Shown here: positions 434 through 60,729 of the stretch, piece after piece
How positions within the stretch are numbered: the stretch's first letter is position 1
How the letters are laid out: each line of letters begins with the position of its first letter
DNA from: Macrostomum lignano
Taxonomy: Eukaryota
DNA: 64,000 nt
Assembly (NCBI GenBank): GCA_002269645.1
Contig: NIVC01001237.1
Span: 124,001-188,000, forward strand
Direction: 5' to 3'
Translations under genes and position numbers: made by a program
The notes under the pieces: model-generated
Told to the model about the DNA's origin: nothing
The model's input: the letters and a program-made list of their open reading frames with translations, nothing else
Databases searched by the model: none

Positions 434-3400
434 ATGGACCACGCTGAAACGCTGGACCTGATCTGCAGTTTAGAGCGAGAAATTTTCTGTTCGGCAACCG
501 ACACCACAGATTCTGAGGACAGATGGAGGTCTGCGACATCTGCGGCTGCTGAAACTTCCGTGTCGGCTGGTGCTGTTGTGTCGCCCGAGTCGTCTGAAGG
601 CGACCCGGATCTCATTGTTCAGCAACAGCAGGAGCAGCAGACTAAAGCAGCCGCCACCATAACACTGGTTAAGTTGGAGCCGTCACAAAACCGGCAAAAA
701 GTTGAACAGGAGGAAGTCGGTAGTCATGCCAACAACAACAACACCAACAATAATAACAACAATGAGGATGCAGCCACTGCTGCTGCTGCTGATAACGATT
801 TGACACCGCCTCGAGTGTACAAACCTTGCGTTGTGTGCGGCGACAAGAGCTCCGGTTATCACTACGGTGTCAGCTCGTGCGAAGGCTGCAAGGTGAGGCA
901 CCAGTTTTAAGATTTGTGAAGTTTAAAATGTGATCTGTTGCTTAGTGTTAGTCTTGGCCTGTAGTGTAACATGTGATCTGTAGCTTAGGGTTAGTCTTGG
1001 CCTGTAGTTTAACATGTGATCTGTAGCTTAGTGTTAGTCTTGGCCTGTAGTTTAACATGTGATCTGTAGCTTAGTGTTAGTCTTGGCCTGTAGTTTAACA
1101 TGTGATCTGTAGCTTAGTGTTAGTCTTGGCCTGTAGTTTAACATGTGATCTGTAGCTTAGGGTTAGTCTTGGCCTGTAGTTTAACATGTGATCTGTAGCT
1201 TAGGGTTAGTCTTGGCCTGTAGTTTAACATGTGATCTGTAGCTTAGGGTTAGTCTTGGCCTGTAGTGTAACATGTGATCTGTAGCTTAGGGTTAGTCTTG
1301 GTCTGTAGTGTAACATGTGATCTGTAGCTTAGGGTTAGTCTTGGCCTGTAGTTTAACATGTGATCTGTAGCTTAGGGTTAGTCTTGGCCTGTAGTGTAAC
1401 ATGTGATCTGTAGCTTAGGGTTAGTCTTGGCCTGTAGTGTAACACCAGGGTTGATCTAGGCCCCTGGAGTGCAGCCTACAAAGAACATGTACTTACTTTG
1501 ATAATCGTACACGTAAAACGTTCCAACCAAACGTTCTTACAGGGCTTCTTCCGTCGCAGCATTCAGAAGAGTCTCGTGTACAGCTGTCAGAAATCCGATC
1601 AATGCGAGGTGACCAGACAGACCAGGAACAGGTGTCAGTCTTGCCGGCTGAGAAAGTGCATCGCTGGCGGCATGTCTAGGGAGGCTGTTCGAACCGATGC
1701 GACATCATCGGGAACAGTGAGAACAGCTCAAGCCTGCCAGCAGCAGCAGCAGCAGCAGTTGCTGTCAGAGTCAGACACTCAATTGTTGGAATCACTGAGC
1801 CGAGCCTACGCAGAGCTGATTGACAGACGAGTTGACAAGAATTCCGTCGAAGAAGAATCTGTTGCAGATTCTGAGGCGCAGATAAGCGGAGACAATGAAA
1901 CTGATGCGGGGGCGGAGAGAGTCTGGCAGCTCACTGACCTGCTGTCGGTGAGTTCACAGTCGCATTGTACTGGCTGTTTATTGAATAATAATGTGGCATG
2001 TGTAGGATACTACTATAAGTAAACAGAACGGATATGTCACCGTATTTGTTTATCTAAATGTGCTCAAGTTGCTAAATCAGTGCTCAACCAGTATACGTGT
2101 TTGAGTCAGTGTACCGATGGGGCCTCATAGTCTGTCAGTGACTCAATTACATCATAATACACTTAATTAGACCATAAAGAACTCGATTAGACAATCAGTG
2201 ACTCAATTAGACCACGAATTACTCAATTAGACCACCAATGACTCAATTAGACCATCAATGACTCAATTAGACCATGAATGACTCAATTAGACCATCAGTG
2301 ACTCAACTGGTGCCCTAGTGACTCAGTCAGAATGTCACTGATGACTCAACTACTGTTGCCAGACTCAATCAGTGCATCCCAGTGACTCAAGCCTCATCGC
2401 CAACTCCCCCAGGTGTCGTCAGTGCAGCGCGTGATCTCATTCGCCCGAGCGCTGCCCGAGTTCAGCAGCCTCCTGCCCGAAGATCAGAGCACCCTATTGA
2501 AGTGCGCGATGCACGAAATCCTCGTGCTGCAGCTGGCCAGCAGCTACGACAGCCAGACTGACCGATTCCAGTTCTCGTCAACCAGCATCAGCTCCGCCGG
2601 GCTTGAGGCTCTGGGATTTCGGCATATTCTGCACAATCTGGCCCAGATTGGCAGCAGCTTGGCGCGCCACCGACTTGTCAGCGAGGAGCTGGCGCTGCTG
2701 GCAGCCGTGGCCATCTTTGCCGACGGTGAGTCCGGCCAGCTCAGCGCTGTGTACCGTCTGACACAGCTTCAGTGCCCGCAGCTGCCTGCATCTACTATGA
2801 GTAGCTCTTGTCTCATTCTGTTCCGTTCTTTCTTCCATAACTCGCTGTCTTCCTACTCTCACTCTCTATCGGAATCTGCATCTCACTCTCTCTCTTACCC
2901 TCCCTCTTACTGCCCTCTCACTCTCCCTCTCGCTCTCCTCTCACTCTCCTCTCACTCTCTCACTCTCTATCGGAATCTGCATCTCACTCTCTCTCTTACC
3001 CTCCCTCTTACTGCCCTCTCAATCTCCCTCTCGCTCTCCTTCTCACTCTCCTCTCTCACTCTCCCCTCTCACTCTTCCCTCTCACTCTCCCCTCTCACTC
3101 TCCCCTCTCACTCTCCCCTCTCACTCTCCCCTCTCACTCTCCCCTCTCAATCTCTTCTCTCACTCTCCCCTCTCACTCTCCCTCTCACTCTCCCCTCTCA
3201 CTCTCCCCTCTCACTCTCCCCTCTCACTCTCCCCTCTCACTCTCCCCTCTCACTCTCCCCTCTCACTCTCCCCTCTCACTCTCCCCTCTCACTCTCCCCT
3301 CTCACTCTCCCCTCTCACTCTCCCCTCTCAATCTCTTCTCTCACTCTCCCCTCTCACTCTCCCCTCTCACTCTCCCCTCTCACTCTCCCCTCTCACTCTC

Positions 3401-5496
3401 CCCTCTCACTCTCCCCTCTCACTCTCCCCTCTCACTCTCCCCTCTCAATCTCTTCTCTCACTCTCCCCTCTCACTCTCCCCTCTCACTCTCCCCTCTCAC
3501 TCTCCCCTCTCACTCACTCATTTTCTCCCAGTTTTCCTTTCCTCTTCCTATCCCTACTCAATGGTCCTCAGTCACACTGTCTGCACCAGTTTCCGCTTTC
3601 ACTATTCTCCCATGCTCCCATCCTAATGCCCCGTCTCCAGATTCGCAAATTAATCATTTAAATGCATTTCTATTATAATGATGCGAGCCCAATTCTACCA
3701 GGGGGATCTCTGAATTGACTTGAATTGAAAACAAAACTGCAGATCACATGGAGCTGAAGGACCCAGATCGCGTGTCCCAGTGCCAGCAGAAAATCCTCGG
3801 CTTGCTGCTGCGCTACCTCAGAGCTGCCCATCCGAACGATCGGGTCCGATTGGCCAGGATCGTCTCCACTGTTGTGCAGCTCAGGGAGGTGTCAGTCAAA
3901 GGTATGCAGTTTGATTGCGCAACATCGTCTCACCAACATGCAGCGCTGACGGCAGCTCTGCCCATTCCACTGACTCCTGAGCAGATGCAAGCGCGCCAAT
4001 ACCGTACTCATTCACACGCTCACCTCAGTCTCACTTCCAGTCTCATCCCCCAGTCTCACCTCAGTCTCATCTCCAGTCTCATCCCGTCTCATCCCAGTCT
4101 CATCCCCCAGTCTCATCCCCCAGTCTCACCTCAGTCTCATCCCCAGTCTCATCCTGAGTCTCACTCCCAGTCTCATCCTGAGTCTCATCCTGAGTCTCAC
4201 TCCCAGTCTCATCCTGAGTCTCATCCTGAGTCTCACTCCCAGTCTCACCCCCAGTCTCATCCTGAGTCTCACTCCCAGTCTCACTCCCAGTCTCACCCCC
4301 AGTCTCACCACCAGTCTCATCCCACAGTCTCACCCCCAGTCTCATCCCCCAGTCTCACTCCCAGTCTCATCCCCCAGTCTCACCTCAGTCTCATCCCCAG
4401 TCTCACCTTAGTCTTATCCCAAGTCTCATCCTCAGTCTCACCCACAGTCTCATCCCCCAGTTTTATCTCCAGTCTCACACCCAGTCTCACCTCAGTCTCA
4501 CCCCCAGTCTCATCCTGAGTCTCACTCCCAGTCTCACTCCCAGTCTCATCCCCAGTCTCACCCCCAGTCTCACCCCCAGTCTCATCCCACAGTCTCACCC
4601 CCGTTCTCATCCCCCAGTCTCACTCCCAGTCTCATCCCCCAGTCCCACCTCAGTCTCATCCCCCAGTCTCACCTCAGTCTCATCCCCAGTCTCACCTTAG
4701 TCTTATCCCAAGTCTCATCCTCAGTCTCACCCACAGTCTCATCCCCCAGTTTTATCTCCAGTCTCACACCCAGTCTCACCTCAGTCTCACCCCCAGTCTC
4801 ATCCTGAGTCTCACTCCCAGTCTCACTCCCAGTCTCATCCCCCAGTCTCACCCCCAGTCTCACCCCCAGTCTCATCCCACAGTCTCACCCCCGTTCTCAT
4901 CCCCCAGTCTCACTCCCAGTCTCATCCCCCAGTCTCACCTCAGTCTCATCCCCCAGTCTCACCTCAGTCTCATCCCCAGTCTCACCTTAGTCTTATCCCA
5001 AGTCTCATCCTCAGTCTCACCCACAGTCTCATCCCCCAGTTTTATCCCCAGTCTAACCCCCAGTCTCGCCCCAGTCTCACCCCCAGTCTCATCCTGAGTC
5101 TCACTCCCAGTCTCATCCCCCAGTCTCACCCCCAGTCTCACCCCCAGTCTCATCCCACAGTCTCACCCCAGTCTCATCCCCCAGTCTCACTCCCAGTCTC
5201 ATCCCACAGTCTCACCCCCAGTCTCATCCCCCAGTCTCACTCTCAGTCTCATCCCCCAGTCTCACCTCAGTCTCATCCCCAGTCTCATCTCCAGTCTTAT
5301 CCCAAGTCTCATCCTCAGTCTCACCCACAGTCTCACCCCAGTCTTTCCAGTCTCATCCCAATCTATTCTGCATTCTGTCTCGCGCTCCGCAGGTTCTGGC
5401 AACGTGCTGCAGCTGAAGATGCAGCACGCAGGCGGCGAGGTCCCCCCTCTGGTGGCGGAGATCATGGACCGCGAAGACATCATCTCGTATCCGTGA
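434..5496 (+). CDS. RAR: Retinoic acid receptor (NR1B) orthologue, 5 coding exons, about 479 aa
   Basis: Exons 434-892, 1543-1947, 2413-2725, 3743-3901, 5393-5496; all GT-AG, phases 0/0/1/1, total 1440 nt. The DBD reads [29 protein letters not shown]|[15 protein letters not shown]...[26 protein letters not shown], nearly identical to the RAR DBD and T-box. LBD signature [17 protein letters not shown]. The C-terminal LKM...PPLVAEIM matches RAR helix 11/AF-2 (LKMEIPGSMPPLIQEML). Confidence 0.93.
929..1444. repeat. 43-bp minisatellite, about 12 copies (RAR intron 1)
   Basis: Unit TGTGATCTGTAGCTTAGGGTTAGTCTTGGCCTGTAGTTTAACA. Confidence 0.95.
2137..2390. repeat. Degenerate 20-bp tandem repeat containing TGACTCA (RAR intron 2)
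   Basis: Unit approximately TGACTCAATTAGACCATCAA. Confidence 0.85.
2910..3515. repeat. CT-rich tandem array (RAR intron 3)
   Basis: Repeats of CTCTCACTCTCCC. Confidence 0.95.
4015..5360. repeat. C-rich tandem array with higher-order duplications (RAR intron 4)
   Basis: Repeats of CCCAGTCTCA(T/C); larger blocks recur at about 4390, 4680 and 4970. Confidence 0.95.
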
Positions 5497-6044
5497 TTCA
5501 ATCGGTTAGAAGTCCTTGAATTGCTTCGATAATATCCCAGAGTTCAGATATATAAAATGTTTAATAATTAAACGCAGTATTAAACGCTGGAGTCTAACAG
5601 TTTCTTAAGCTCGTATTTTTTGCTTGATTTTTTTTCATCACTCTGCATCATAGGATGCGCAGTTGCTATGGGAAACTGACCATAATTCCCTTTTGTTAGC
5701 CAACGACATTGCATCCTTGTACATAGCCAACAAAGCAAAGGTTCGTATTCAGGGATATTGTGAATAAATTTGCATTATATAACATTAGTGTTGTGTGCAC
5801 TATTTATTTGTCACAATATTTTTCAACAAAAATTATCGATCCTTATATTTTTTCCAAGCCGCTTCTACTTCAGACCAGCTTCAGATGTTTGTTATACAAT
5901 TTCTCCACTGCGGTGTACATACTGTGCGTACTCTTCATTTATTGCTTTTCATACTGGTGACTATTGCTGTACTTTTACACGCATTTGGACTGTTTTGTGA
6001 TTTCACTATCAGCAATGATGACTAATTACTCTGCAGCTACCTGA

Positions 6045-6575
6045 CTCCTTGTGTCACTCCCATCCCTCCGTGTGTCACTCCCATCCCCGTGTGTCACTCC
6101 CATCCCGTGTCAGTTCCATCACCGTGTGTCACTCCCACCCCTCCGTGTGTCACTCCCATCCCTCAGTGTGTCACTCCCATCCCCGTGTGTCACTCCCATC
6201 CCTCCGTGTATCACTCCTATCCCTCCGTGTGTCACTCCCATCCCCGTGTATCACTCCCATCCCTCCGTGTGTCACTCCAATCCCTCCGTGTGTCACTCCC
6301 ACTCCTCCGTGTGTCACTCCCATCCCCGTGTGTCACTCCCATCCCTCCATGTGTCACTCCCATCCCCCCGTGTATCACTCCCATCCCTCAGTGTGTCACT
6401 CCCATCCGCGTGTATCACTCCCATCCGCGTGTATCACTCCCATCCGCGTGTATCACTCCCATCCGCGTGTATCGCTCCCATCCGCGTGTATCACTCCCAT
6501 CCCCGTGTCACTCCCATCCGCGTGTGTCACTCTCATCCCCATGTGTCACCCCCATCCGCGTGTGTCACACCACTA
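6045..6575. repeat. About 21-bp minisatellite downstream of RAR
   Basis: Unit GTGTCACTCCCATCCCTCCGT and variants. Confidence 0.93.
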
Positions 6576-10729: not shown

Positions 10730-12250
10730 GATAAATGTAAATAAGCGCCATGGATAGTATTGATTTGGATGAGATTATTAAAATCATGGATAAGATTGAT
10801 AAGCGCCATGGTTAAGACTGATAAGCGCCATGGATAAGATTGATAAGCGCCATGGTTAAGACTGATAAGCACCATGGATAAGATTGATAAGCGCCATGGA
10901 TAAGATTGATAAGCGCCATGGTTAAGACTGATAAGCGCCATGGAGAGTATTGATAAGCGCCATGGATAAGAATGATAAGCGCCATGGATAAGATTAATAA
11001 GCGCCATGGATAAGACTGATAAGCGCCATGGATAAAATTAATATGCGCCATAGATAAGATTGATAAGCGACATGGATAAGATTAATAAGCGCCATAAATA
11101 AGATTAATAAGCGCCATGGATAAGATTGATAAGCGCCATAGATAAGATTGATAAGCGCCATGGATAAGATTGATAAGCGCCATGGATAAGATTGATAAGC
11201 GCCATGGATAAGATTGATAAGCGCCATGGATAAGATTGATAAGCGCCATAGATAAGATTGATAAGCGCCATGGATAAGACTGATAAGCGCCATGGATAAG
11301 ATTAATATGCGCCATGGATAAGATTGATAAGCGCCATGGATAAGATTAATAAGCGCCATAGATAAGATTAATAAGCGCCATGGATAAGATTGATAAGCGC
11401 CATGGATAAGACTGATAAGCGCCATGGATAAGATTGATAAGCGCCATGGATAAGATTGATAAGCGCCATGGATAAGATTGATAAGCGCCATGGATAAGAT
11501 TAATAAGCGCCATGGATAAGACTGATAAGCGCCATGGATAAAATTGATAAGCGCCATAGATAAGATTAATAAGCGCCATGGATAAGACTGACAAGCGCCA
11601 TGGATAAGATTGATAAGCGCCATGGATAAGATTGATAAGCGCCATGGATAAGATTAATAAGCGCCATAGATAAGATTAATAAGCGCCATGGATAAGATTG
11701 ATAAGCGCCATGGATAAGATTGATAAGCGCCATGGAGAGTATTGATAAGCGCCATGGATAAGACTGATAAGCGCCATGGATAAGATTGATAAGCGCCATG
11801 GATAAGATTGATAAGCGCCATGGATAAGATTGATAAGCGCCATGGATAAGATTGATAAGCGCCATGGATAAGACTGATAAGCGCCATGGATAAGATTGAT
11901 AAGCGCCATAGATAAGATTAATAAGCGCCATGGATAAGACTGATAAGCGCCATGGATAAGATTGATAAGCGCCATGGATAAGATTGATAAGCGCCATGGA
12001 TAAGATTAATAAGCGCCATAGATAAGATTAATAAGCGCCATGGATAAGATTGATAAGCGCCATGGATAAGATTGATAAGCGCCATGGAGAGTATTGATAA
12101 GCGCCATGGATAAGACTGATAAGCGCCATGGATAAAATTGATAAGCGCCATGGATAAGATTGATAAGCGCCATGGATAAGATTGATAAGCGCCATGGATA
12201 AGATTGATAAGCGCCATGGATAAGATTGATAAGCGCCATGGATAAGATTG
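10730..12250. repeat. 22-bp minisatellite, about 65-70 copies
   Basis: Unit GATAAGCGCCATGGATAAGATT; degenerate copies extend left to about 10330. Confidence 0.97.
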
Positions 12251-12354
12251 ATGGTCAAAATTATAAACTCAGAGAACAACAGAAATGGATTTAACGCAAA
12301 AACAAAAATAGCAATTGTAGAAGCTGTAGTTTATTTTTAAGCTAAAAAGCATAT

Positions 12355-14826: not shown

Positions 14827-17800
14827 TCAGACCAGAGGCTCAGACGCGGCCCTGCCATCCCCAGACAGAAGAGGCAGACTCTCAGCCCTGGCAATGCCCT
14901 GCTCTTGCTGGTCAGACCGGCGCTGCTGGTCCCGATGGTTGTCGGCATCGACTTCTAGCACCAGGATGTTGCTGTCATCATCGCCCAGAGACATGTTCAC
15001 CGAGGAGGTGTCAGGCCCCATCATGGAAGCGGATCTGGGGTGCTGCAGCGTCGCGGGCCTCAAGCTGACCAGGCCCTGCTTTTGTTGTTGTTTCTGCTGC
15101 TTCTGGTGAAATTTGTGCTGCTGCTGCTGCGGCTTGGTGAGCGATTTCAAAGCTTCCTTGCGTTCGGCGTTGGCTTTGGCTTTGGCCTTGGCGCCGCTGG
15201 ACAGCTGGAACACGTCCAGGTGGTGCACAAGATCCTTGCCCTGACGTTGCAGCCGCTTCAACAGGGCTCTGGTCAGGTGGGCCTCCGTCTCCTCGGCTGT
15301 GCCGAACGAGTCGTTAGAGTGCACCTCGTTGAAGTCGAAGGTGCGGAACAGGTCGACGAGTTGCTGCTCCTCTGGCTCGCCGTTGTCGGTGAGGCCTGGG
15401 GGGAACAGCGAGTCCTCGGCGCCGCCCAGCTTCACCGACACCTTCAGATTGGAGTTGAGGATCTCCGACAGAGGCAGGTCGGCCTTGTCCTTGCCGAGCG
15501 GGTTCATCAGGCACATGCCGATCTTGAACCAGCCTGGGGCAGGTTGGGATTCGCGAATCTTAGGATTTGTCATTTAGGATCTTTCAGTTGGTCTGGTTGG
15601 GGATTTGGAATCTTTTAGTTTGGTCTGGTTGGGATTTGGGGAATTTTAGTTTGATCTGGTTGGGATTTGGGATCTTTGAGTTTGGTCTGGTTGTGGATTT
15701 GGGATCTTCTAGTTTGGTCTGATTGGGATTTGGGATCTTTGAGTTTGGTCTGGTTGGGATTCGGGATCTTTTAGTTTGGTCTGGTTGATGATTTGGGATC
15801 TTTGAGTTTGGTCTGATTGGGATTTGGGATCTTTGAGGTTGGTCTGATTGGGATTTGGAATCTTTAGTTTGGTCTGGTTGGGATTTGGGATCTTTGAGTT
15901 TGGTCTGATTGGGATTTGGGATCTTTTAGTTTGGTCTGATTGGGATGTGGAATCTTTTAGTTTGATCTGATTGGGATTTGGGATCTTTGAGTTTGGTCTG
16001 GTTGGGATTTGGGATTTTTGAGTTTGGTCTGGTTGAGGATTTGGGATTTTTTTTTGCTTGGTCCACAGATACTAAAATTTAGATGGGCCACCCAGGCATA
16101 TATACTTAGTAAAACAGCTTTCTACTTTCATTTCAGTAGCAAAGAAGAAAACATAAGCTATTTATAAAAATCAAGCCAGCTGAAATTACTTTGGTAACTT
16201 TAGAAGCCCAAGCTCGCAGGCGTAAACAATTTGCTAATTGGTTCAGCCATAATGTACATTGGCCAGTGCACTGAAATGTACATGGCAGCTTTAGGCTGGA
16301 ATTCCGAGAAATGCAATAAAAATTGGGGCGACGCCCGGGGGTGTGAAAAGGCGCGATTTGAGGGTTTAAGCTGGGGGTAAGAGCCAATAAATGCCTTGGC
16401 TTTAAAAATACACGAAAATGCTTCTCTTGAACATACTACTGAACTGAAAGTGGCTTACACGCAAATGTGCTGAGTGTCCTATCTAGTTAGTCTAGTTAGT
16501 CTAGTATCTGTGGTGTGGTCTGGACTCGTTTTACACGCCCCCCCCCCCTATTAACAACTCACCCAGATAAAAGATAAACTCCAACGAGCCCAAAATGGGG
16601 ATATGGGACAGGACTTCCACGCCGGTGGTGCTCCCCGGCTCGTCGACTCTGGAGCCGTTGACAAGGGAGTGCCGATCCAATCCCACCTCCGACTCGATCA
16701 GCTGAGTTGACAGCAGCGTGGAGAACAGGAAGATGTACACGGCCGTGACGGCGACCTGGGTGTACACCAGCGGGATGTTAAACTCGCTGTAGGTCCACAC
16801 AATGCCGAGATCGTTGCGAAAGTTCTGCGCGATCGTCACCATCCACAGGAACTGGCGCTCGTCCGCGATGCAGCCTGCGACGGTGTGCGTTTGGGATTTG
16901 GGATTTGTCTCAACTGAGATCCCCAATTTCAACATAATACTCACGTCAGCCTTTCATCTCACTCTGAAAGATTACCCTGCATCTCATTATTAGTTTCCCT
17001 CCATCTCACTATTAGATTCCCTTCACCTCACTACTAGATTTCCTTCATCTCACTATTATTTTCCCTCCATCTCACTAATATGTTCCCTTCATCTCACTAT
17101 TAGATTCTCTTCATCTCACTATTAGGTTCCCTTCATCTCACTATTAGTTTCCCTTCATCTCACTATTAGTTTCCCTTCATCTCACTATTATATTCTCTTC
17201 ATCTCACTATATTTTTCCCTTCATCTCACTACTAGTTTCCCTTAGTCTCACTATTAGATTCCCTTCATCTCATTACCGGATTCCCTTCATCATATTATTG
17301 AATTCCCTTCATCTCATTATCGGATTCCCTTCATCCCATTATTAGGTTCCCTTTATTTCACTATTAGATTCCCTTCATCTCGACATCTCACTGTTATATT
17401 CCCTTCATCTCACTATTAGTTTTCCTTCATCCCTTGATCATTTTCAAGCGAAACTGCAAAATTGTGTGCTAGCTAGTGCAGCTCAGGCTAGTAGTTGCAT
17501 ACTGAATTAAATTGGCAGTGGTCTGCCTCTACGCCTCGAGGGATGGCAGGATGTAAAATACTAGCCAGATCCCCGTTTATCTTAGTATATATATATATTA
17601 GTAGTATTATTATCTATACATATAACGCTGCACGAGTGATGAGGACGAACCAGTTAACCAGCTGAAGCTGACTGCAAATCCCAAATTTATGCCAACACGC
17701 GATAGTAGTTCAAGCATGCTATACAACACATACATGCTAATATAGTTAACCCTCTGTAAAGATAAGGAACTGGATCCTTCTTTCCCCCACTCCCTTGACT

Positions 17801-20800
17801 AAGATCGATGTAAGAGTAAGATGAACAGCGCAAAGACTGAGAGGGAATTCCAGATAGATACAAAGAATCTGAGACAACCCTAGACAAAGACTCAGAGACA
17901 TCCCAGACGGACAAAGACTTAGAGACGTCCCAGACGGACAAATACTCAGAGACACCCAGAGCCGACAAAGACTCAGAGACACCCCTAGACAAATACTCAG
18001 AGACACCCAGAGCCGACAAAGACTCAGAGACACCCCTAGACAAAGACTCAGACAACCCAGACCGACAAAGACTCAGACACCCCCATACCGACAGACTCAG
18101 CTCTAGACAACCCTAGATAAAGATTCAGATACAACCTTAGACAGATTCAGATATAACCCTAGACAAAGACTCAGAGGCAACCCAGACACAAAGACTCAGA
18201 AACACCCCCAGAATGCTGACTCAAAATTGAAGGATTAAATCAATGAAACTAAAAAAACATGAAACTCACCAATATTCTTAGCCCGCCTCATAATTCTGTT
18301 AGCCCAGCCAAGAGGCAGCCAGTACTCAGGCGTATAAGTCCAATCGGTGTCTTTAGACAGCTCAGCAGACCTAGCGAACACTTGCATCTCTTCCTCAGTG
18401 ATCAGTTTGCCAAAATATTTCTGCACCTTAGCATCGGAATTGATCAGTTCGAGTCTCTGTCGCCAGGTAAGCTTAAACTCTCGAGTATTCTTCGGTCGCA
18501 TAAAACCGAACCGATGCTTGATGTGCAGCGAAATAGTGGCCATCATTAGTATCCAGGCCAGGTTGAAATATCGCAGCACAGTGATTCGAACTTTTCTAGC
18601 AATATCGGATTTCGATTTGTGACAGCTCTCGATTAGGCCTTGCGCGTAGAAGGCTGGCGCGTGCATCCATGGGATCGCCATGCACATGCTCCACCAGCTG
18701 GGCAGAATAGGATGCGTGCGGGGTGATAGGCAGTGCAGCCCCTTAATCACTTGAATTCAGGATGTAAAATCATATAGACTAAGACTAATACTTCTCTTTG
18801 AATCATTTTACAGATCTTGATAGCAAAAATTATCATATATTTTATTTACCATCACTGCTCTCTGCTATTTTCCTTCTCTTGCAATCTACTGTCTCCACCT
18901 CTCACCAACCACTCTCAGTATCCACTCACTTCCTCCACCTTTCACTTTTCATCTTCCTCTCAGTCTCCTTCTCCCTCTTAGTCTCTATCTGCCTCACTGC
19001 CTGCCACTCTCCCTCTCCCTCTTCCTGCAACTCTCCCTCTTCCTGCAACTCTCCCTCTCCCTCTTCCTGCAACTCTCCCCCTCTCCCTCTTACTGCCACT
19101 CTCCCTCTCCCTCTTCCTGCCACTCTCTCTCCCTCTTCCTGCCACTCTCCCTCTGTTTTCCTGCCACTCTCCCTCTCTTTTCCTGCCACTCTCCCTCTCT
19201 TTTCCTGCCACTCTCCCTCTCTTTTCCTGCCACTCTCCCTCTCCCTCTTCCTGCCACTCTCCCTCTCCCTCTTCCTGCCACTCTCCCTCTCCCTCTTCCT
19301 GCCACTCTCCCTCTCCCTCTTCCTGCCACTCTCCCTCTCCCTCTTCCTGCCACTCTCCCTCTCCCTCTTCCTGCCACTCTCCTCTTCCTGCCACTCTCCC
19401 TCTTCCTGCCACTCTCCCTCTCTTTTCCTGCCACTCTCCCTCTCTTTTCCTGCCACTCTCCCTCTTCCTGCCACTCTCCCTCTCTTCCTGCCACTCTCCC
19501 TCTCCCTGTTCCTGCCACTCTCCCTCTTCATCTTATCCCTCTTATTCATTTTTCCCACTCTCTCTCTCCAATTCGTGGAGATGCCTCCCCCTCTCGTCTC
19601 CAGTCTCCCTCCCACGCTCCTATTCTAATCCCGATTCCTAATATAATAATAATAACCTCTGAATGCGACTGAACCAGTGGCTACTGACTGTTGCGCCTCA
19701 CGAGGGCGATAGCCGGCCTCAATTTTAGGCTGCGTTAACAGACAATTCAAGTCCCTGGGAGTTAGACACACATCTTCCACCAGTCGCTTAATAAAAGTGG
19801 AGTCGTAAATTGCAGTTGTCGTTTTCTAAAAATCGAACTCATGTCGAACAACCAAGAGACCAAGCCTTTTTTATTGCCTGCTATCTATCCACTGTCTTAT
19901 GGATGCGATTTTAATGGAATAACGATGTTACAATATGATTTAGATGATTACAGTAAAAAGTTATTAACTCAAGTAGGTAATGACTCTAACTCCACACTGC
20001 ACTTGGTTTTCTTAGAAATGATCTGAAAGCCGGTAAACCAACGTATATCTGTCGTACCGCCAGTGCTGAATGGGGGTTTCGCTATTTCACTTGGCTTGAT
20101 GCTTGTTAGGATAGAAAAAAACTTGAAGTTATCCGTGCATGTGGAAATTTCCAAGTGGAATTTTCCACGAATTCCAAGCAATGATTTATCGTGCGCTTGG
20201 TTTGGATAGCCTTCGCTTCAGATAATATTTACTAAAGTACGCGCTCTGTGGGCTCTAATTTTTCATCAGTCAGTCAGTCAGACAGGACGTTCGTGTGTTA
20301 AGGCTAACAAGGGTGAAGGAAGTTGAGGCCGAGGGTAAACCACCTTATCTCTTACCTAAAGGCTAAAAACGCTAAAATTAGAAACCAAGCCAGAGAGCCA
20401 AATCTTTCTAGGAAAAAATAATTTTAAAAAGTCAGTACGCTCGTACAACGTGCCTACTTTCCTAATATGGAAATTGCGTTTTTTCGCCTTCGCCCTGTTA
20501 AAAAACTAAAAGTAAGTTTAAGTAAGCCTCGTTGGTTTGGTTCGGGCGAACGAAATCATAATGCCGCACTGCGTCAGTCGAGATGGAAAGGGAGATAGAC
20601 AGAGAAATTCGACACGAGGGTTAAAATTACTGGCTCTAGCTAGCTAGATAGATTTCCACAAGTCTGACTTCACCTAGAAAGGGCACGAGGACCGTACAGA
20701 CTACAGACCGTCTGCGAAAGCCCACAGGGACCCAGGAGAAAAATTCCATTCTTAGTTATTTTTAGACATTTTTGACTTTCCCTCCAAGTAAAAGTACAGA

Positions 20801-22098
20801 TTTTCAAAAGTTTAAGTTTTTTATTCTGATCCGTAAACAATAATATTACTAATAGTACACGACGAACTATAAAACACAACTTAAAATCTAACCTTAACCT
20901 AACCTAAACAGAGTGCAGTCATGTCTATAGAGTCAAAAAGAAACACGAGAAACGCATTGCGAGATTCAGTTAAAACAAATATAAAAGTTGGCTCCATAAG
21001 TCTAGATTGGAACTAGAACAAACGTTTTATGACGTATGAAACATTCGCCGACGGCGACACTTATTCAGACACTTCTACAGACACTTTAGTTTCTATCGTA
21101 CGAATCGTAGGAACAAGCATTAAATTTAAAATTTGTTTATTCCTAACAAACTATCAGTAAACAGCTTTATTTTTAGCTTTCTTGCTTTATTTTATTAAAT
21201 ATGAATCATGAAATTTGTTATTCTGCATAGATTCTCTTCACGTGAAGAAGAATGTTAAATTTGTCCAGGACACTTCCTAATTCATATTTAATAAAATAAA
21301 GCAAAAAAAGCTTAAAATAAAGCAGTTTACTGGTAGTTTGTAAGGAATAAACAAATTTAATGCTTGTTCCTACGATTCGTACGACAGAAACTAAAGTGTC
21401 TGTAGAAGTGTCTGAATAAGTGTCGGCGAATGTTTCATACGTGTTTTATGGGGTTGCTTTTTACAAGATCAAAACTTCTCATTGTGAAAATAGGTAACAA
21501 TTTTTAAGACCTCTGGTCCTGGAAATAAAAAACTACCTAGTGTGTTAATAGTTAAGAAAGCAAACTTTTGGATTTGTTTAAATTTCTGTACATTGTGAAT
21601 CGTGATTTTGTGAACTCCGTTTAAAAATATATTAGCATGGATTAACAAAAAACAAAAAGCCGAATGTAGGCTAGGTCTTCGAATTTCCATTGATTTTATC
21701 AGCAATTTGCTCATTTAATACCCCGTGCAATTTAATGTAATTTAATTATTTAATTTAACCTTCACTTTTACAATATGCAATTATCAATTATCGATTTTTA
21801 TCGATTGATCAAAAAACACTCACCGACTAAGAACCGAAGAGACAAAGAAGCCGAGCATAAAGGACAACGGCACTGAAGTTCGAATTGATCCAGTACTGCG
21901 AATAACAGCTTCAAATGTAATTCGCCTTGTAGGAGATAATAATTGATGATACATGACAGCTAAGCCGACGTAGGCCAATGCAAAGAAAAAAAAATCAACC
22001 CAGAGCAATTGCCAAACACTGCCGCTCCAGCGAAAGAGCAGTTTTAAAAAGAACAGCTTCTCTTTAGTGTAGATGTTGCTGGCGTAGCTCACCGCCAT
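14827..22098 (-). CDS. Bestrophin-family anion channel, divergent, 4 coding exons, about 573 aa
   Basis: Exons 22098-21824, 18697-18270, 16874-16563, 15533-14827; GT-AG, phases 2/1/1, total 1722 nt. Motifs: MAVSY...LLFRWSGS, VPLSFMLGFFV...R|WW, RY..LA, EYWLP..W, IPLVYTQV, G|WFKIGMCLMNPLG. Confidence 0.92.
15575..16050. repeat. About 31-bp minisatellite (bestrophin intron 3)
   Basis: Unit GGGATTTGGGATCTTTTAGTTTGGTCTGGTT. Confidence 0.93.
16063..16513. mobile_element. MITE-like element with imperfect terminal inverted repeats
   Basis: Ends CCACAGATACTA (16063-16074) and TAGTATCTGTGG (16502-16513). Further subterminal inverted similarity (TAGATGGGCCAC..CTACTTTCA.TTCAGTAG). A homologous partial copy lies at 55933-56105. 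No clear TSD. Confidence 0.7.
16955..17430. repeat. 22-bp minisatellite (bestrophin intron 2)
   Basis: Unit CATCTCACTATTAGATTCCCTT. Confidence 0.9.
17830..18210. repeat. Degenerate about 22-bp repeat (bestrophin intron 2)
   Basis: AGACAAAGACTCAGAGACACCC-type units. Confidence 0.85.
18985..19530. repeat. CT-rich tandem array (bestrophin intron 1)
   Basis: CTTCCTGCCACTCTCCCTCTCCCT units. Confidence 0.93.
21032..21442. mobile_element. 411-bp foldback MITE with 8-bp target-site duplication
   Basis: Arms 21032-21206 and 21280-21442 are reverse complements. Termini ACGTATGAAACATTCGCCGAC / GTCGGCGAATGTTTCATACGT. Identical GTTTTATG flanks at 21024-21031 and 21443-21450. Confidence 0.9.
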
Positions 22099-23119
22099 TT
22101 TTGTGTGAATTCGGTCCGGACAGGATCGGTGGGAAAACTTTCTAACCAGCAACTTGCAAACTTAACTTGCAAACCGATAGTCGTAGCCTAGATACTTATA
22201 CTATTGTCCTGCTGTTCCTGACTCTTATAAAAGTAACTTTCCTTCATACAGCAAAACAAGTCAATACTGACGAAGGCCTGGGTGAGAACTGGAGTGCCCT
22301 ATTGCAGAGGAAAGGAATTATAAACAGGATAGGATTCCCTTCCTCCAATGCTTTGTCCCTTCTCCCTCATTCCTTCCCCTCCCCCGATGGAGGAGGGCCG
22401 AGGGGGAAGGAGAGAGAAGGAAAAGGCGTTGTAGGCTGGAAAATTACTGGGGCTTTCCCCCGATGTCCAAGGTCAAACAGATCTCGCCCAGTCTGTTCCT
22501 CCTTGGGCCAACACTGTACACACAAGAGGGTATGTACATTTAGCTCCCCCCAATTCGTCCCTCTCTCCCCCAAATCGCGGGGCCAAATGGCTTTATTACT
22601 TCATTTTGTGCGGCAGAAACTGTACTGTGAACTTTGTCTCGACACGCACGAGTCCTCGTCTGCGACAGATTTTTATCCAAGACCAACACTTGTTTTTCTC
22701 CGTCGCAGACTCGCAATTCGCTAACTTATTCCCGTTTAATAACACAAGTTCACCATAATGAGGCACAGCACAGGCAGGAATGATGTAGCTGGACGACCTT
22801 AGTGACAGCCTGACAGGGATTCTACTGCTTCTACCTGTATGTAGCGCATTAAAAGGTTGAAACTGATTTCAAATGTTGTGGATTTCTATCTAATGTTGTA
22901 GAATTCAAATGTTCATTATTTTTTGTCTCAGGGCGGCCCTCAACTTCATTTGTTTCTAATGCCGTGAATTCCTAATGCCAATTTCTAAGGCGATTCGCTC
23001 ACTTATTAGACAAATTTTCAACTCTAAAATCACTCACAATAGGTACAGTTTTAGATGAGATTGTACAATTTTACTCTTGATTCTTGAGGATGATCTAGTG
23101 AGATTCTATGGATGATTCA

Positions 23120-26599: not shown

Positions 26600-29500
26600 T
26601 TAAACATCGGTAGCGTACAGATCCTCATTAGCGTCATCTTCTCTATGATTATAATTTCTATAGTTATAACTTGTAGGAGCGGCAGTGGCAGCGCTACTAA
26701 TACTACTACTACTGTTATTAGTAGTAGTTGCGGTTGGCCGATATCCGAATTCTTGAACACGGGCTGGCGGCAGAACTGCAGACTGCTGATGCTGTTGAAA
26801 CTCCTCAGCCAGAGGCAGCACCCCAGCGGGGGGCCGGTACCAGTGCGAGGCGCCAGTCTGGCTGGGCTGCTGGTCCCGCTCGTACTCCAGCACTGGCCGA
26901 GGCTGGTAGCGAAATGACTGCTGATGCTGTTGCTGGGCGGTTGGAGACGGATCTAACAGATTGCTGGCTGACTGAGTCCTTCGACTAGCGGCTATCAGCA
27001 GATGGTGCTGATGCTGCTGCTGCTGCTGCTGCAACAGGTGCTGCTGCTGGTAGCTGTGCTGGTATTGCTGCTGCTGCTGCTGTTGCTGCTGTTGCAGAAT
27101 CCTGTAATCCGGCGCTGCTGCCGAAGCGGAAGATGACGAAGTGACCGACAGTCGAGCAGATGCAGCTACAAGGTGATGCGAACTACCAACAACGGGTAGA
27201 TGGAAGCTGGAGTCTTGGAAACCCGAGTCCAAGCTCGATTGGGTGACTCTGTGCTGCTGCTGCTGTTGCGCCGGAGGCTGGGCAGAGTATTGATGGAGCG
27301 GCTGCTGCGGCTGCTGATGGTACTGCGACTGGGAGCTGTGTCTGAATGTTGGGATGGGAGAAATTGGATAAATTGTTTCTTAGAAATAATAAAACATGAT
27401 AATTACTTCTAAATGATTTCAGGTAGATAATTGATTCTCAGGTAGATAATTGATTCTCAGGTAGATAATTGATTCTCAGGTAGATAATTGATTCTCAGGT
27501 AGATAATTGATTCTCAGGTAGATAATTGATTCTCAGGTAGATAATTGATTCTCAAGTAGATAAGCGGGTAGATTCTCAGGTAGACAATTGATTCTCAGGT
27601 AGATAAGCGGGTAGATTCTCAGGTAGACAATTGATTCTCAGGTAGATAAGCGGGTAGATTCTGAAGTAGATAATTGATTCTCAGGTAGATAAGCGGGTAA
27701 ATTCTCAGCTAGATAATTGATTCTCAAGTAGACAATTGATTCTCAGGTAGATAAGCGGGTAGATTCTCAGGTAGATAAGCAAGTAGATTCTGAAGTAGAT
27801 AATTGATTTTCAGGTAGATAAGCGGGTAAATTCTCAGCTAGATAATTGATTCTCAAGTAGACAATTGATTCTCAGGTAGATAAGCGGGTAGATTCTGAAG
27901 TAGATAATTGATTCTCAGGTAGATAAGCGGGTAAATTCTCAGCTAGATAATTGATTCTCAAGTAGACAATTGATTCTCAGGTAGATAAGCGGGTAGATTC
28001 TGAAGTAGATAATTGATTCTCAGGTAGATAAGCGGGTAAATTCTCAGCTAGATAATTGATTCTCAGGTAGATAATTGATTCTCAGGTAGATAAGCGGGTA
28101 GATTCTCAGGTAGACAATTGATTCTCAGGTAGATAAGCGGGTAGATTCTCAGGTAGACAATTGATTCTCAGGTAGATAAGCGGGTAGATTCTGAAGTAGA
28201 TAATTGATTCTCAGGTAGATAAGCGGGTAAATTCTCAGCTAGATAATTGATTCTCAAGTAGACAATTGATTCTCAGGTAGATAAGCGGGTAGATTCTCAG
28301 GTAGATAAGCAAGTAGATTCTGAAGTAGATAATTGATTTTCAGGTAGATAAGCGGGTAGATTCTGAAGTAGACAATTGATTCTCAGGTAGATAAGCGGGT
28401 AGATTCTGAAGTAGATAATTGATTCTCAGGTAGATAAGCGGGTAAATTCTCAGCTAGATAATTGATTCTCAAGTAGACAATTGATTCTCAGGTAGATAAG
28501 CGGGTAGATTCTCAGGTAGATAAGCAAGTAGATTCTGAAGTAGATAATTGATTTTCAGGTAGATAAGCGGGTAGATTCTGAAGTAGACAATTGATTCTCA
28601 GGTAGATAAGCGGGTAGATTCTGAAGTAGATAATTGATTCTCAGGTAGATAAGCGGGTAAATTCTCAGCTAGATAATTGATTCTCAAGTAGACAATTGAT
28701 TCTCAGGTAGATAAGCGGGTAGATTCTGAAGTAGATAATTGATTCTCAGGTAGATAAGCGGGTAAATTCTCAGCTAGATAATTGATTCTCAAGTAGACAA
28801 TTGATTCTCAGGTAGATAAGCGGGTAGATTCTGAAGTAGATGATTGATTCTCAGGTAGATAAGCGGGTAGATTCTGAAGTAGATAATTGATTCTCAGGTA
28901 GATAAGCGGGTAGATTCTCAGGTAGATAATTGATACCGGTAGGTACTCAGTTGGTCGATAACTGCAGGATGCAGACACTCACTTGGCGCTTCCAGAAGCA
29001 ATAGACCTTGACGAGGAGCCCCTGCTCGAATCCCCGGAACCTGCGCCATTGTGGTCCACAGCCTGGCCAGACAGAAGCTGTGGGTTGATTTTGAAAATCA
29101 AATATTTTATTAACATTTACTACTTATCATAAGTAGTAGTTTAATATATATAACTAATACAAAAATTTGTTGGGATAAAAACAAAACACAAAACCTGGAT
29201 GTAAAATTTGTCGTTGTTTTTATAACCCCCCCCCCCAACAAGCTGCGAAGATGTGACAAGAACTTAACAATGTCTAAAAAGAAATAAATAAACCCTATAA
29301 TATGTACATGTATACACAACTATACCACCTGTACTGCGCTCCTGCCAATGGAATAAAACGACGACTTTCTCAGTACAGAAGAGAATGACGCCTTTTTTCG
29401 AGTTGATTGTACAACTCGATCAACCGACATCGACTGCTTGGCATTGGAACTTTTTGTCTAGATATTCGGTACGGAAAATACACGGTTACTATGACTTAAT

Positions 29501-32500: not shown

Positions 32501-35500
32501 CGAGATCGCCGACATGGACGCCGCAGCCGATGCCGCCGCCGACGTAGCCAGCATCAGATCGGAGCTGGAGCTGCGCTGTGAACCCGGCAGAGAATGATGG
32601 CTGTCTTCCACTGGCCCAGCAGATGCTGCTGCGGCGGCAGCGGAGCCATCAAAGGCAGCGGAATTATGGTGCTGCTGATGGTGCTGGGCGGTGGCCAATA
32701 GGCGCAGATCGCTAGTAGAATTGGCTTGCATAATTTTCTGATCGCGATTCACAGACTGAGAGCTGCGAACTGGGTGGGGTTTGGAAGGTAAGAAGGTTAA
32801 GTTATATACCAATTGGTGGCTAAACACGATCCATAAGGATGTATATCACAGCTAAATTAACTATTGAAAGTACTTAAATGTAATGATACCAATGTTAAAT
32901 GTACTTTCTAAAGTTCCTAATAAACTTTAGAAAGATGAAAAATAGCGGACTGTCTGTGTCTGTGTACAGCGACAGCAGTGCATGCATGTACATGACCATA
33001 ATGAGCAAAATGCTGAGGCAGAAGAACCAGAGGTTTAGGAGGAGCGGAGAAATGTAGAGGAGTTGGAGAAGTGGATGGGGAGATAAAGGGATGGAGAAGG
33101 GGAGGCAGAGAAAGAAGGGATGGAGAAGTGGAGGGGAGAGATAAAGGGATGGAGAAGGGGAGGCAGAGAGAGAAGGGATGGAGAAGGGGGGGGGAGGGAG
33201 AGGGAGAGAGCAAGAGGGAGAGGAGAGCGAGAGAGGCCTACGCTCGTAAGTCTCCATCAAAGTGACTCTTCAATATCCTGAGTGACCATCTGAGTGGCTC
33301 TTCACTGACCATCAGAGGAAGACCGACAGAGGGAGAAGGACAGGGAGAGGCAGAGGGAGAGGCAGAGGCAGAGGCGGAGGCAGAGGGAGAGGCAGAGGCA
33401 GAGGCGGAGGCAGAGGGAGAGGCAGAGGGAGAGGCAGAGGCAGAGGCAGAGGGAGAGGCAGAGGGAGAGGCAGAGGCAGAGGCAGAGGGAGAAGGAGAGG
33501 CAGAGGGAGAGGCAGAGGCAGAGACAGAGGGAGACGCAGAGGGAGAGGGAGAGGCAGAGGGAGAGGGAGAGGCAGAGGCAGAGGGGGCAGGGCCAGAGGG
33601 GGCAGGGCCAGAGGGGGCAGGGCCAGAGGGGCAGGGCCAGAGGGGCAGGGCCAGAGGGGCAGGGCCAGAGGGGGCAGGGCCAGAGGGGGCAGGGCCAGAG
33701 GGGCAGGGCCAGAGGGGGCAGGGCCAGAGGGGGCAGGGCCAGAGGGGGCAGGGCCAGAGGGGGCAGGGCCAGAGGGGCAGGGCCAGAGGGGCAGGGCCAG
33801 AGGGGGCAGGGCCAGAGGGGCAGGGCCAGAGGGGCAGGGCCAGAGGGGGCAGGGCCAGAGGGGCAGGGCCAGAGGGGGCAGGGCCAGAGGGGGCAGGGCC
33901 AGAGGGGGCAGGGCCAGAGGGCCAGAGACAGGCAGCTTACACATGGCCAGCCTGCCAGACCGCTTGAGCTCGCGCAGATGACTAGCCGGGCCCCTGCCGC
34001 TGCTCCTCTGCCGCAGTTGCTCAGGCCAGTCCGCAGCCGCAGCGCCAGACGCGGCATCGTCGGCGCGGGTGAACATCGGCGGCGGCCGCCGATCGCACGG
34101 CGAATCATCGTCTTCGGGAATGTCCTCCTCCGCGGCTTCCGCGTAGCTGCCGCTGCTGAACCGATTGACGCCAGAGGCGAAAGAGGCTGCGGTGCCGGCC
34201 TAGTGTGGTAGTGGGTATAAACAATATAAACTCTCAAATAAACCATTTGATTGCTAATAAGATGACAATGAGTAGCCTGAGTGACCATTGGAGTGACACT
34301 AAGTAGCCTGAGTGACCATTGGAGTGACTCTAAGTAGCCTGAGTGACCATTGGAGTGACTCTAAGTAGCCTGAGTGACCATTGGAGTGACATTAAGTATC
34401 CTGAGTGACCATCAGAGTGACTCTTTAGTGACCTAAGTCAGTGACTCTTCAGTGACCATCAGAGTGACTCTTCAGTGACCTAAGTCAGTGACTCTTCAGT
34501 GACCATCACAGTGACTCTTCAGTGACCTAAGTCAGTGACTATCACAGTGACTCTTCAGTGACCTAAGTCAGTGACTATCACAGTGACTCTTCAGTGACCT
34601 AAGTCAGTGACTCTTCACTCTTCAGTGACCTAAGTCAGTGACTCTTCACTCTTCAGTGACCTAAGTCAGTGACTCTTCACTCTTCAGTTATCCAAGTCAC
34701 TGACCATCACAGTGACTCTTCAGTGACCTAAGTCAGTGACTCTTCACTCTTCAGTGACCTAAGTCAGTGACTCTTCACTCTTCAGTGACCTAAGTCAGTG
34801 ACTCTTCACTCTTCAGTGACCTAAGTCAGTGACTCTTCACTCTTCAGTGACCTAAGTCAGTGACTCTTCACTCTTCAGTGACCTAAGTCAGTGACTCTTC
34901 ACTCTTCAGTGACCTAAGTCAGTGACTCTTCACTCTTCAGTGACCTAAGTCAGTGACTCTTCACTCTTCAGTGACCTAAGTCAGTGACTCTTCACTCTTC
35001 AGTGACCTAAGTCAGTGACTCTTCACTCTTCAGTGACCTAAGTCAGTGACTCTTCACTCTTCAGTGACCTAAGTCAGTGACTCTTCACTCTTCAGTGACC
35101 TAAGTCAGTGACTCTTCACTCTTCAGTGACCTAAGTCAGTGACTCTTCACTCTTCAGTTATCCAAGTCACTGACCATCACAGTGACTCTTCAGTGACCTA
35201 AGTCAGTGACTCTTCACTCTTCAGTGACCTAAGTCAGTGACTCTTCACTCTTCAGTGACCTAAGTCAGTGACTCTTCACTCTTCAGTGACCTAAGTCAGT
35301 GACTCTTCACTCTTCAGTGACCTAAGTCAGTGACTCTTCACTCTTCAGTTATCCAAGTCAGTGACCATCACAGTGACTCTTCAGTGACCTAAGTCAGTGA
35401 CCATCACAGTGACTCTTCAGTGACCTAAGTCAGTGACCATCACAGTGACTCTTCAGTGACCTAAGTCAGTGACCATTACAGTGACTCTTCAGTGACCTAA

Positions 35501-38500: not shown

Positions 38501-38843
38501 TGCTGTTGCATAGTAGGGGCACTGGCTGCAGGGCCACTGTGATGTACAGGCGGACTGACACAGACAAACAGACTCACAGATAGACAGACAGACAGGCAGG
38601 CAGACAGACACAAGGGCAGACAAACAGACACTAAGACAGACAGACAGACAGACAGACAGACTGACAGACTGAAAGACAGACAGACAGACTGAAAGACAGA
38701 CAGACAGACACACAGACAGACATACAGACAGACAGACAGACGGACAGTCAGACAGACAGACTGACAGACAGACAGACAGACTGAAAGACAGACAGACAGA
38801 CACACAGACAGACAGACACACAGACAGACACACAGACAGACAT

Positions 38844-38938
<95 letters not shown>

Positions 38939-38967
38939 CACAGACACACACAGACATACAGACTGAA

Positions 38968-39036
<69 letters not shown>

Positions 39037-51300: not shown

Positions 51301-51419
51301 CAGCAGCAGCAGCAGCAGAGGGAGCAACCACAGCGAAAACAGCATCAGCAGCAGCAGAGGGAGCAACCACAGCAACAACAGCAGCAGCAGCAGAGGGAGC
51401 AACCACAGCAGCAGCAACA

Positions 51420-51460
<41 letters not shown>

Positions 51461-60636: not shown

Positions 60637-60729
60637 CTGGGGGAGGGAGAGAGAGAGGTGACCAAGATAGGTTACGTGATTTTCGATTTTTTTTCTAGTT
60701 TCTAGTCTGATGTTTCCAAGTTGTAGTTT

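Follow-up and report, generated by a model that had tools for sequence, protein, structure and literature searches.

A divergent RAR-type nuclear receptor in which the basic residues of the retinoic acid carboxylate site are replaced

Results and Discussion

Structure of the receptor gene

A 64,000-nucleotide stretch of contig NIVC01001237.1 (positions 124,001 to 188,000 of the forward strand; GenBank assembly GCA_002269645.1, deposited as Macrostomum lignano) was analysed over its full length and is here called the window. Its first 5.5 kb contain, on the + strand, a nuclear-receptor gene whose predicted product appears to be a highly divergent member of the retinoic acid (RA) receptors (RAR, NR1B), and in which the acid-binding end of the ligand pocket has had all its basic residues replaced. 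Testing of the reading frames gave five exons encoding 479 amino acids, with the frame open across all 479 codons and each of the four introns bounded by canonical GT-AG dinucleotides. The reading frame begins with the ATG at 434, the first after in-frame stops just upstream, and ends with the TGA at 5494-5496, 3' of which an AATAAA is found at 5763-5768.

Exon 1 (434..892, followed by a GT donor at 893) encodes, from the start codon on, a Q/N-rich A/B domain and then the first zinc finger as far as CEGCK (827-892). Exon 2 (1543..1947; AG acceptor 1541-1542, GT donor 1948) encodes the second zinc finger (1543-1674), a poly-Q hinge, helix 1 in the ligand-binding domain (LBD) and the start of helix 3 (WQLTDLLS, 1924-1947); its hinge/T-box segment, 16 residues at 1678..1725, is without the basic RNDRNKKKK. 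Exon 3 (2413..2725, translated in frame 1), the interval in which the finding had been placed by the first-pass annotation of this DNA, encodes the remainder of helix 3, helices 4-5, the beta-turn and LBD helices 6-8. Exon 4 (3743..3901; AG acceptor 3741-3742, GT donor 3902) runs from helices 8/9 to helix 11, ending in REVSVK; its phase-1 junctions yield D393 and G446, and its alignment with RARs is ungapped. Exon 5 (5393..5496) supplies the end of helix 11, the core of activation function 2 (AF-2; PPLVAEIM, 5443-5466) and the tail DREDIISYP (5467-5493) directly before the stop codon. A MAFFT alignment with 25 RARs has no gaps around any of the four exon junctions (CEGCK/GFFRR, LLS/VSS, FAD/DHM and SVK/GSG), which supports the splice model.

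The product has the layout of the nuclear receptor superfamily, a C4 double zinc-finger DNA-binding domain (DBD) followed by a helical-sandwich LBD, with Pfam matches to zf-C4 at residues 131-199 (6.8e-31) and to Hormone_recep at residues 290-443 (7.2e-13). The eight zinc-binding cysteines, the P-box (EGCKG), the LBD signature and AF-2 are all intact; the AF-2 Glu is kept, and the charge clamp of helix 3 shows a conservative Lys-to-Arg change.

Each of the four introns contains its own unrelated minisatellite, located from intron 1 to intron 4 at 920-1444, 2135-2306, 2881-3515 and 4026-5344 and consisting of a 43-mer x12, a 60-mer x3, a 13-mer x50 and a 12-mer x110, the last organised within a higher-order unit of 290 bp. 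Just 3' of the gene there is a fifth array (19-mer x26, 6050-6568).

Residues of the ligand pocket

The register of the pocket was taken from three independent alignments, one made by HMMER to the Platynereis RAR (6EU9) and to human RARalpha, and two by MAFFT, of which the first (L-INS-i) included 22-25 RARs and the second 160 RAR-type sequences. Numbering follows the human RARalpha sequence embedded in P0126, in which R272, R276, S287, S232, I270 and V395 were verified. In all three alignments the helix 5 segment (11 residues, 2515..2547) has Gln328 (CAG, 2530-2532) at the position of R272 and Ser332 (AGC, 2542-2544) at the position of R276, so the loss of both helix 5 arginines that the first-pass annotation had described is real. 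The block from DQxxLLK to F286/S287 is ungapped; none of the alignments puts an Arg or Lys at 276, and none can be shifted onto it. The two substitutions reported for helix 3 were also correct (F228 to Thr, here Thr284, and C235 to Ser, here Ser291), and the alignments bear out the retention of W225 (W281), L231 (L287), S232 (S288), F286, S287, F302, V395 and PPLVAEIM, to which G391 and L398 can be added. What needs amendment is the location given for these features. The interval 2413-2725 does contain helix 5, but the pocket residues are encoded by three exons, the final codons of exon 2 (1924-1947) specifying W225, F228, L231 and S232, and exon 5 (5404-5466) specifying V395 and AF-2.

The changes go beyond helix 5. 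K234 is replaced by Ser290, which with Ser291 is encoded by TCG TCA at 2416..2421, and R394 by Asn449 (AAC, 5401-5403), next to Val450 at the position of V395. L266, a Leu in 19/19 ordinary RARs, is replaced by His322 (CAC, 2512..2514). In the beta-turn FSS (2572..2580) F286 and S287 are kept, and after it a single residue is deleted at G289, a site that is Gly in 153 of the 160 RAR-type sequences. With K234 to S, R272 to Q, R276 to S and R394 to N, every basic residue of the acid-binding end is now neutral polar, and the residue set typical of the RA-binding receptors of vertebrates and amphioxus (K234, R272, R276, S287, G289, R394) reads S, Q, S, S, deletion, N.

Among the 156 other RAR-type sequences with a residue at position 272, 155 have Arg, and the sole exception is a broken gene model. 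The loss of Arg272 is thus close to unique among RAR-type sequences, and is more than chance. Position 276 is less constant in the same 160 sequences: Tubulanus, Lingula and a sea cucumber have Lys there, Reishia and Owenia have Cys, Dimorphilus has Ser and two Pomacea models have Gln. Arg276 has been lost repeatedly among other spiralian RARs.

Membership in the RAR family

In full-length searches the top matches were all RARs (34-39% identity), headed by those of spiralians (chiton, Tubulanus, Pinctada, Capitella and Lingula). An exhaustive HMMER search of 1.84 billion cluster representatives also returned only RARs at the top, the best being a Tubulanus RAR cluster (254 bits, 39% identity), and none of these representatives proved to be a relative of more than 40% identity, nor did any orphan receptor of flatworms rank above the RARs. 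Partial matches at 40-44% identity proved to be truncated vertebrate or snail RAR models rather than closer relatives. The top full-length match, a sturgeon protein labelled 'UNVERIFIED_CONTAM', was considered as a possible parasite relative and rejected, being a vertebrate RAR model whose DBD is duplicated. Nothing was found by a word-indexed homologue search using the LBD alone, and a scan of metagenomes with exons 3-5 found no close relative.

The two domains were also compared separately. The DBD is 67-77% identical to those of RARs and at most 64% identical to those of other groups, and its best five matches in the PDB are RARalpha, RARbeta and RARgamma structures at 125-130 bits, the next family following at 105. 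For the LBD, the best PDB match is the Platynereis RAR 6EU9 with 117 bits, ahead of the human RARs (88-90) and LXRbeta (approximately 88); against all fetched proteins (phmmer), spiralian RARs scored 100-118 bits, and deuterostome RARs and invertebrate TRs approximately 91. Family profiles built without the receptor sequence gave LBD scores of 141 for spiralian RAR, 126 for deuterostome RAR, 120.5 for TR, 119 for LXR/EcR and 102 for Rev-erb/E75 and for ROR, and DBD scores of 128-135 for RAR with the next family at 122. Membership of NR1H (LXR/EcR) does not fit these data, given a DBD identity of 48-52%, a DBD profile score of 105 and an LBD profile score of 119.

A neighbour-joining (NJ) tree of 335 DBD and LBD columns (200 bootstraps) placed the receptor inside the RAR clade at 76.5%, on a long basal branch beside the rotifers, and an NJ tree of the DBD recovered a RAR clade including the receptor at 86.5% bootstrap; these are simple distance trees, in which long-branch artefacts are possible. 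The C-terminal tail, DREDIISYP followed by the stop, agrees in length and position with the ending DRxENVCIP of 20 spiralian RARs, an ending that deuterostome RARs do not have. From these sequence comparisons we conclude that the receptor is an NR1B member, most probably a fast-evolving spiralian RAR orthologue, for which the evidence from the LBD is positive but modest.

Predicted fold and divergence across the protein

An AlphaFold model computed from a 45-sequence alignment had a mean pLDDT of 80.5 and a pTM of 0.79, with pLDDT values of 86-97 in helices 3-5 and 59-68 in helices 11-12. It superposes on the structure of RARgamma with all-trans retinoic acid (ATRA), 2LBD, with a TM-score of 0.81, and on nuclear receptor LBD crystal structures with TM-scores of 0.78-0.84. 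The LBD is thus predicted to have the canonical 12-helix fold.

Divergence along the protein was scored over conserved columns, defined as those identical in at least 80% of 19 ordinary RARs. For the receptor, retention of such columns is 53/63 within the DBD, 1/6 within the hinge, 33/76 for the LBD outside the pocket and 9/14 for the pocket itself. In the same columns the rotifer Brachionus retains 57/63, 5/6, 26/76 and 2/14, and the RAR of Capitella 63/63, 6/6, 73/76 and 13/14, respectively. By this measure the LBD as a whole is as divergent as that of the rotifer RAR. The pocket is not its most degraded part; the hydrophobic wall is largely retained, and the loss concerns the charged end in particular. 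Degeneration of the whole pocket was considered and rejected, as pocket columns are kept at least as well as those of the remaining LBD, the difference in retention not being significant (Fisher p = 0.24).

At least 90% of 44 RARs keep the basic hinge/T-box motif VRNDRNKKKK; in the receptor other residues stand in its place, and a poly-Gln run comes after them. The rotifer-like RAR P0150 is also without this motif, and its absence is therefore compatible with membership in the RAR family. The basic motif of the hinge is part of the region responsible for nuclear localisation and for contact with the DNA minor groove, and DNA-site choice or nuclear import may differ in a receptor lacking it.

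Comparison with other RARs

The mollusc RARs (those of Nucella lapillus, Reishia/Thais clavigera, Crassostrea gigas and Patella vulgata) resemble the receptor in being spiralian RAR orthologues with an altered pocket, and that of Reishia shares the absence of Arg276. The differences are larger. Mollusc LBDs are 55-60% identical to those of other RARs, Arg272 is present in all of them and Arg276 in most, and their basic hinge is kept, in contrast to the receptor, which has only 25-32% LBD identity to any RAR and is without R272, R276, R394, K234 and the hinge motif. The first-pass annotation stated that mollusc RARs had lost their response to RA, and the literature agrees: these receptors are unresponsive with milder pocket changes, and still bind DNA with RXR (PMC6947571, PMC8363021, PMC5398557).

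The rotifer RAR of Brachionus calyciflorus (P0193) is similar to the receptor in its long branch, its RAR-type DBD and its very divergent LBD, and the two adjoin at the base of the RAR clade. The pattern of loss in the pocket is the opposite. In P0193 and in P0150, a rotifer-like RAR from a Logan transcript, Arg272 and Arg276 are kept and the hydrophobic wall is mostly lost (2-6 of 14 conserved columns, against 9 of 14 in the receptor). P0150 shares the substitutions F228 to Thr and L266 to His with the receptor while keeping both arginines; this could be convergence or distant kinship of long-branch RARs.

The RAR of Dimorphilus gyrociliatus (P0059) is the only other sampled sequence with Ser at R276 (RLISSY, compared with QLASSY in the receptor) and also shares rare states with it. 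It differs in that Arg272 and the hinge motif are present and that 11 of the 14 conserved columns of the pocket are kept. A specific kinship of the two was rejected, as they are not grouped in the trees and the counts of rare states track branch length. The proposal that the receptor represents an independent repurposing of RAR is plausible, but it does not make the receptor a special case, as R276 has been replaced in several other spiralians and the rotifer RAR retains just 3/25 pocket residues (PMC6947571).

Proposed function and alternative explanations

Human RARalpha binds the carboxylate of RA through R276 and S287 (PMC5821490), as the first-pass annotation had stated, and in RARgamma L233, K236, R278 and S289 hydrogen-bond ATRA (PMC6947571), K236 of the gamma form being equivalent to K234 of the alpha form. 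The receptor retains two of these four residues. RARA mutations found at relapse in ATRA-treated promyelocytic leukaemia include R272Q, R276W/Q, G289R/E and R394W (PMC8533805 Table 2), and all of these ATRA-resistance sites are altered in the receptor, which constitutes independent functional evidence against the vertebrate binding mode. The correspondence with the human PML-RARA mutants extends to the same four positions and, for R272Q, to the identical substitution (PMC8533805); the two situations differ in that the mutants are single somatic changes in a high-affinity receptor, whereas in the receptor the changes belong to the germline, occur together and lie in a domain that is divergent throughout. 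Because K234 and R394 have also been neutralised and the resistance sites are altered, we judge the vertebrate mode of carboxylate binding to be lost, and the residues present make canonical nanomolar RA binding very unlikely. The ligand inference of the first-pass annotation stands to this extent; whether the receptor binds a non-acidic ligand or acts independently of ligand, the two outcomes it had offered, is not separable from sequence.

In the mechanism that we propose, the receptor would be unable to clamp the RA carboxylate in the manner of vertebrate RARs, and would not be a nanomolar RA switch. It would most likely still bind AGGTCA-type repeats, probably with RXR, a pairing assumed from the family (there is no RXR gene within the window), and co-regulator exchange via AF-2 would still be expected. 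Its activity would be set by its expression level and its partners and not by physiological RA, as in mollusc RARs. The retained cavity might be empty, be filled with a structural lipid or sense a neutral ligand, and the sequence does not choose among these. We lean, with some caution, towards this view of the receptor as a divergent NR1B orthologue that serves as a DNA-bound regulator, probably with RXR, and is not switched by physiological RA.

Several observations weigh against it. ATRA is bound by the Platynereis RAR only at 1-10 uM and in a pose rotated by approximately 90 degrees (PMC5821490), the carboxylate being placed between helices 3 and 6 and not hydrogen-bonded to the equivalents of R276 and S287 (PMC5821490). 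Because this receptor binds ATRA without using those residues, arginine loss would not be decisive if the annelid mode is ancestral for spiralians, and by this analogy the loss alone would not be proof of retinoid blindness in a spiralian RAR. The retention of pocket columns hints at a cavity that is under selection and may hold a ligand, the comparison with the remaining LBD having the p value of 0.24 given above. The missing basic hinge could alter both the RXR pairing assumed from the family and the preference for DNA sites. As regards RAR membership itself, the NJ tree of the LBD did not resolve the position of the receptor (a sister group consisting only of RARs in 42/200 bootstraps), its LBD identity of 25-32% to RARs is barely above that to TR, EcR or LXR (27-29%), and Foldseek ranks LXRbeta level with the RARs, so that the model does not discriminate between RAR and LXR. 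No orthologue was recovered in the sequence searches. Finally, pocket columns and pocket sites were both counted on a list of 26 residues based on the RARgamma-ATRA structure and confirmed from papers only for L233, K236, R278 and S289 of the gamma form and R276 and S287 of the alpha form; on this list the receptor differs from human RAR at approximately 15 sites, most of the changes outside the charged end being swaps among I, L, V and M.

A pocket re-tuned to a non-acidic ligand such as retinol, retinal or a sterol-like lipid, the hydrophobic wall holding its tail, would also account for the neutral residues, and we regard this as unlikely but worth serious attention. A neutral polar site formed by His322, Gln328, Ser332, Asn449, Ser290/291 and Thr284 would hydrogen-bond the hydroxyl, aldehyde or keto head group of such a ligand. 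The replacements look selective, four basic residues having become polar rather than hydrophobic and a new His having appeared at an invariant Leu; polar substitutions could equally arise by drift at a site that is no longer needed. The pocket wall is kept better than the LBD average and AF-2 is intact, but the enrichment of the pocket is the non-significant one noted above, and any such ligand is putative. The LBD is as close to LXRbeta, a receptor for neutral sterols, as it is to human RARs, both in score (approximately 88 bits each) and in structure, a likeness that is within the noise for an NR1 domain at 25-30% identity.

To much the same degree unlikely is a low-affinity retinoid sensor of the ancestral type seen in Platynereis, in which RA or another retinoid would be bound by the hydrophobic cavity in a rotated pose without the helix 5 arginines and would elicit a micromolar response. 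The Platynereis dumerilii RAR (6EU9, PMC5821490), which binds ATRA without carboxylate hydrogen bonds and whose authors considered the carboxylate to be of little importance there (PMC5821490), is the best solved match to the receptor LBD (117 bits, 34% identity), and is similar to it as a spiralian RAR in domain order, in the type of C-terminal tail and in having a small residue at F228. This residue is Thr in the receptor and Val in spiralian RARs, and a bulky Phe impairs the annelid mode; the comparatively well kept hydrophobic wall also fits. The annelid receptor, however, has all four hydrogen-bonding residues, keeps K234, R272, R276, S287 and G289, and differs from human RAR at 5/25 pocket sites only, whereas the receptor described here is far more divergent, differing at about 15/26 sites that include L266H and the deletion of G289. 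Moreover, molluscs with far milder changes are already unresponsive.

A very improbable alternative is that the gene is not a RAR orthologue at all, but a lineage-specific NR1 orphan with a RAR-like DBD, in which case the positions compared with R272 and R276 would not be equivalent. Flatworms have NR1-type receptors that invite this comparison, namely SmRAR (Smp_144170), described as RAR-like (PMC11879061), and the NR1a/SmNR1 orphans, and a survey of flatworms found divergent NR1 orphans and no RAR (PMC8363021). The LBD values are also equivocal, with identities of 29-32% to spiralian RARs against 27-29% to TR, EcR and LXR in addition to the unresolved LBD tree. The RAR affinity of SmRAR, which we compared by its description, was assigned on loose criteria, the same analysis calling C. 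elegans NHR-23 RAR-like. None of SmRAR, NR1a and SmNR1 was among the best relatives of the receptor in the exhaustive search of 1.84 billion representatives, where only RARs stood at the top and no flatworm orphan appeared. In addition, RAR profiles independently give the best score for either domain (by 6-13 bits for the DBD and by 20 bits for the LBD), the combined tree gives 76.5% for RAR, the tail DREDIISYP matches the DRxENVCIP specific to spiralian RARs, and the alignment through helices 3-5 is ungapped.

Decay of the locus into a pseudogene, or an error of assembly or sequencing, is barely credible. In its favour, R272Q (CGG to CAG) and R276S (AGR to AGC) would each need only one base to change, minisatellites surround the locus, and sequence searches found no transcript or orthologue. 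Against it, there are 479 open codons in five exons with four canonical introns, the cysteines, P-box, LBD signature and AF-2 have all been preserved, the divergence extends across the entire LBD and is not confined to two bases, and the AlphaFold model is confident.

Significance

RAR is a standard case of hormone-receptor evolution, with a low-affinity ancestral sensor represented in annelids, high-affinity receptors in chordates and repeated loss of the response to RA in molluscs and rotifers. RARs with degenerate pockets that are unresponsive to RA are already known from molluscs and rotifers, as is the repeated replacement of R276 in spiralians. What distinguishes the receptor is the near-unique loss of Arg272, the absence of all basic residues from a pocket whose wall is kept, the loss of the hinge motif and a possible flatworm origin. 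As such it represents an extreme data point, in which the cavity and AF-2 are retained and all positive charge has gone from the acid-binding end.

RAR was reported missing from all Platyhelminthes by a survey of flatworm genomes that included M. lignano (PMC8363021). If the host of this DNA is a flatworm, the presence of the receptor is itself new and would revise this published absence, and the receptor would offer a handle on old reports that RA disturbs planarian regeneration. A bolder proposal, which we regard as decidedly doubtful, is that this is the first true RAR of the flatworm lineage, that its cationic clamp has been turned into a neutral hydrogen-bonding site (His322, Gln328, Ser332 and Asn449) above a hydrophobic cavity that has been preserved, and that it senses a non-acidic lipid, for instance retinol, retinal or a sterol. 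If true, such a neutral-pocket flatworm RAR would be a documented ligand switch within NR1B.

Other features of the window

Downstream of the receptor gene, four further coding features were recognised. Bestrophin-like exons lie on the - strand at 14827-22152, with the Pfam Bestrophin domain in the reading frame 14827-15573 and further open reading frames (ORFs) at 16531-16944, 18235-18750 and 21820-22152. These exons gave two matches only, a bestrophin of Macrostomum lignano (52% identity) and a contig of Logan run DRR639055 (50%), the latter being a different locus. Taken with the spiralian tail of the receptor, the bestrophin match makes a flatworm or a close ally the probable host, on the evidence of one gene; a search against Rfam recognised no RNA gene in the window that would help to place the organism. 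A fragmentary ORF on the - strand at 38748-39317, in which Pfam recognises a FERM C-terminal PH-like domain (1.3e-05), runs into an (ACAG)n/(TGAG)n array and is probably one exon of a larger FERM-domain gene. On the + strand at 48033-52044, exons for a ZZ zinc finger (split at 48.5/49.35 kb) and for a C-terminal NBR1-type UBA domain flank a long middle exon rich in poly-Gln and Pro, and this is probably an NBR1/p62-like autophagy receptor gene. A single ORF of 322 codons with a fibrinogen C-terminal domain (Pfam 1.2e-38) is located at 53991-54959 on the + strand; an identical product is not on record in the public gene collection.

Approximately 30 more mutually unrelated minisatellites of 0.4-1.9 kb are distributed across 7000-64000, many with a strong strand-compositional skew; examples are the arrays at 10785-12252, 27410-28934, 34514-35668, 40772-41847, 43361-45273 and 60724-61574. 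The minisatellites create long spurious ORFs in all frames, and the density of tandem repeats is unusually high for gene-bearing DNA.

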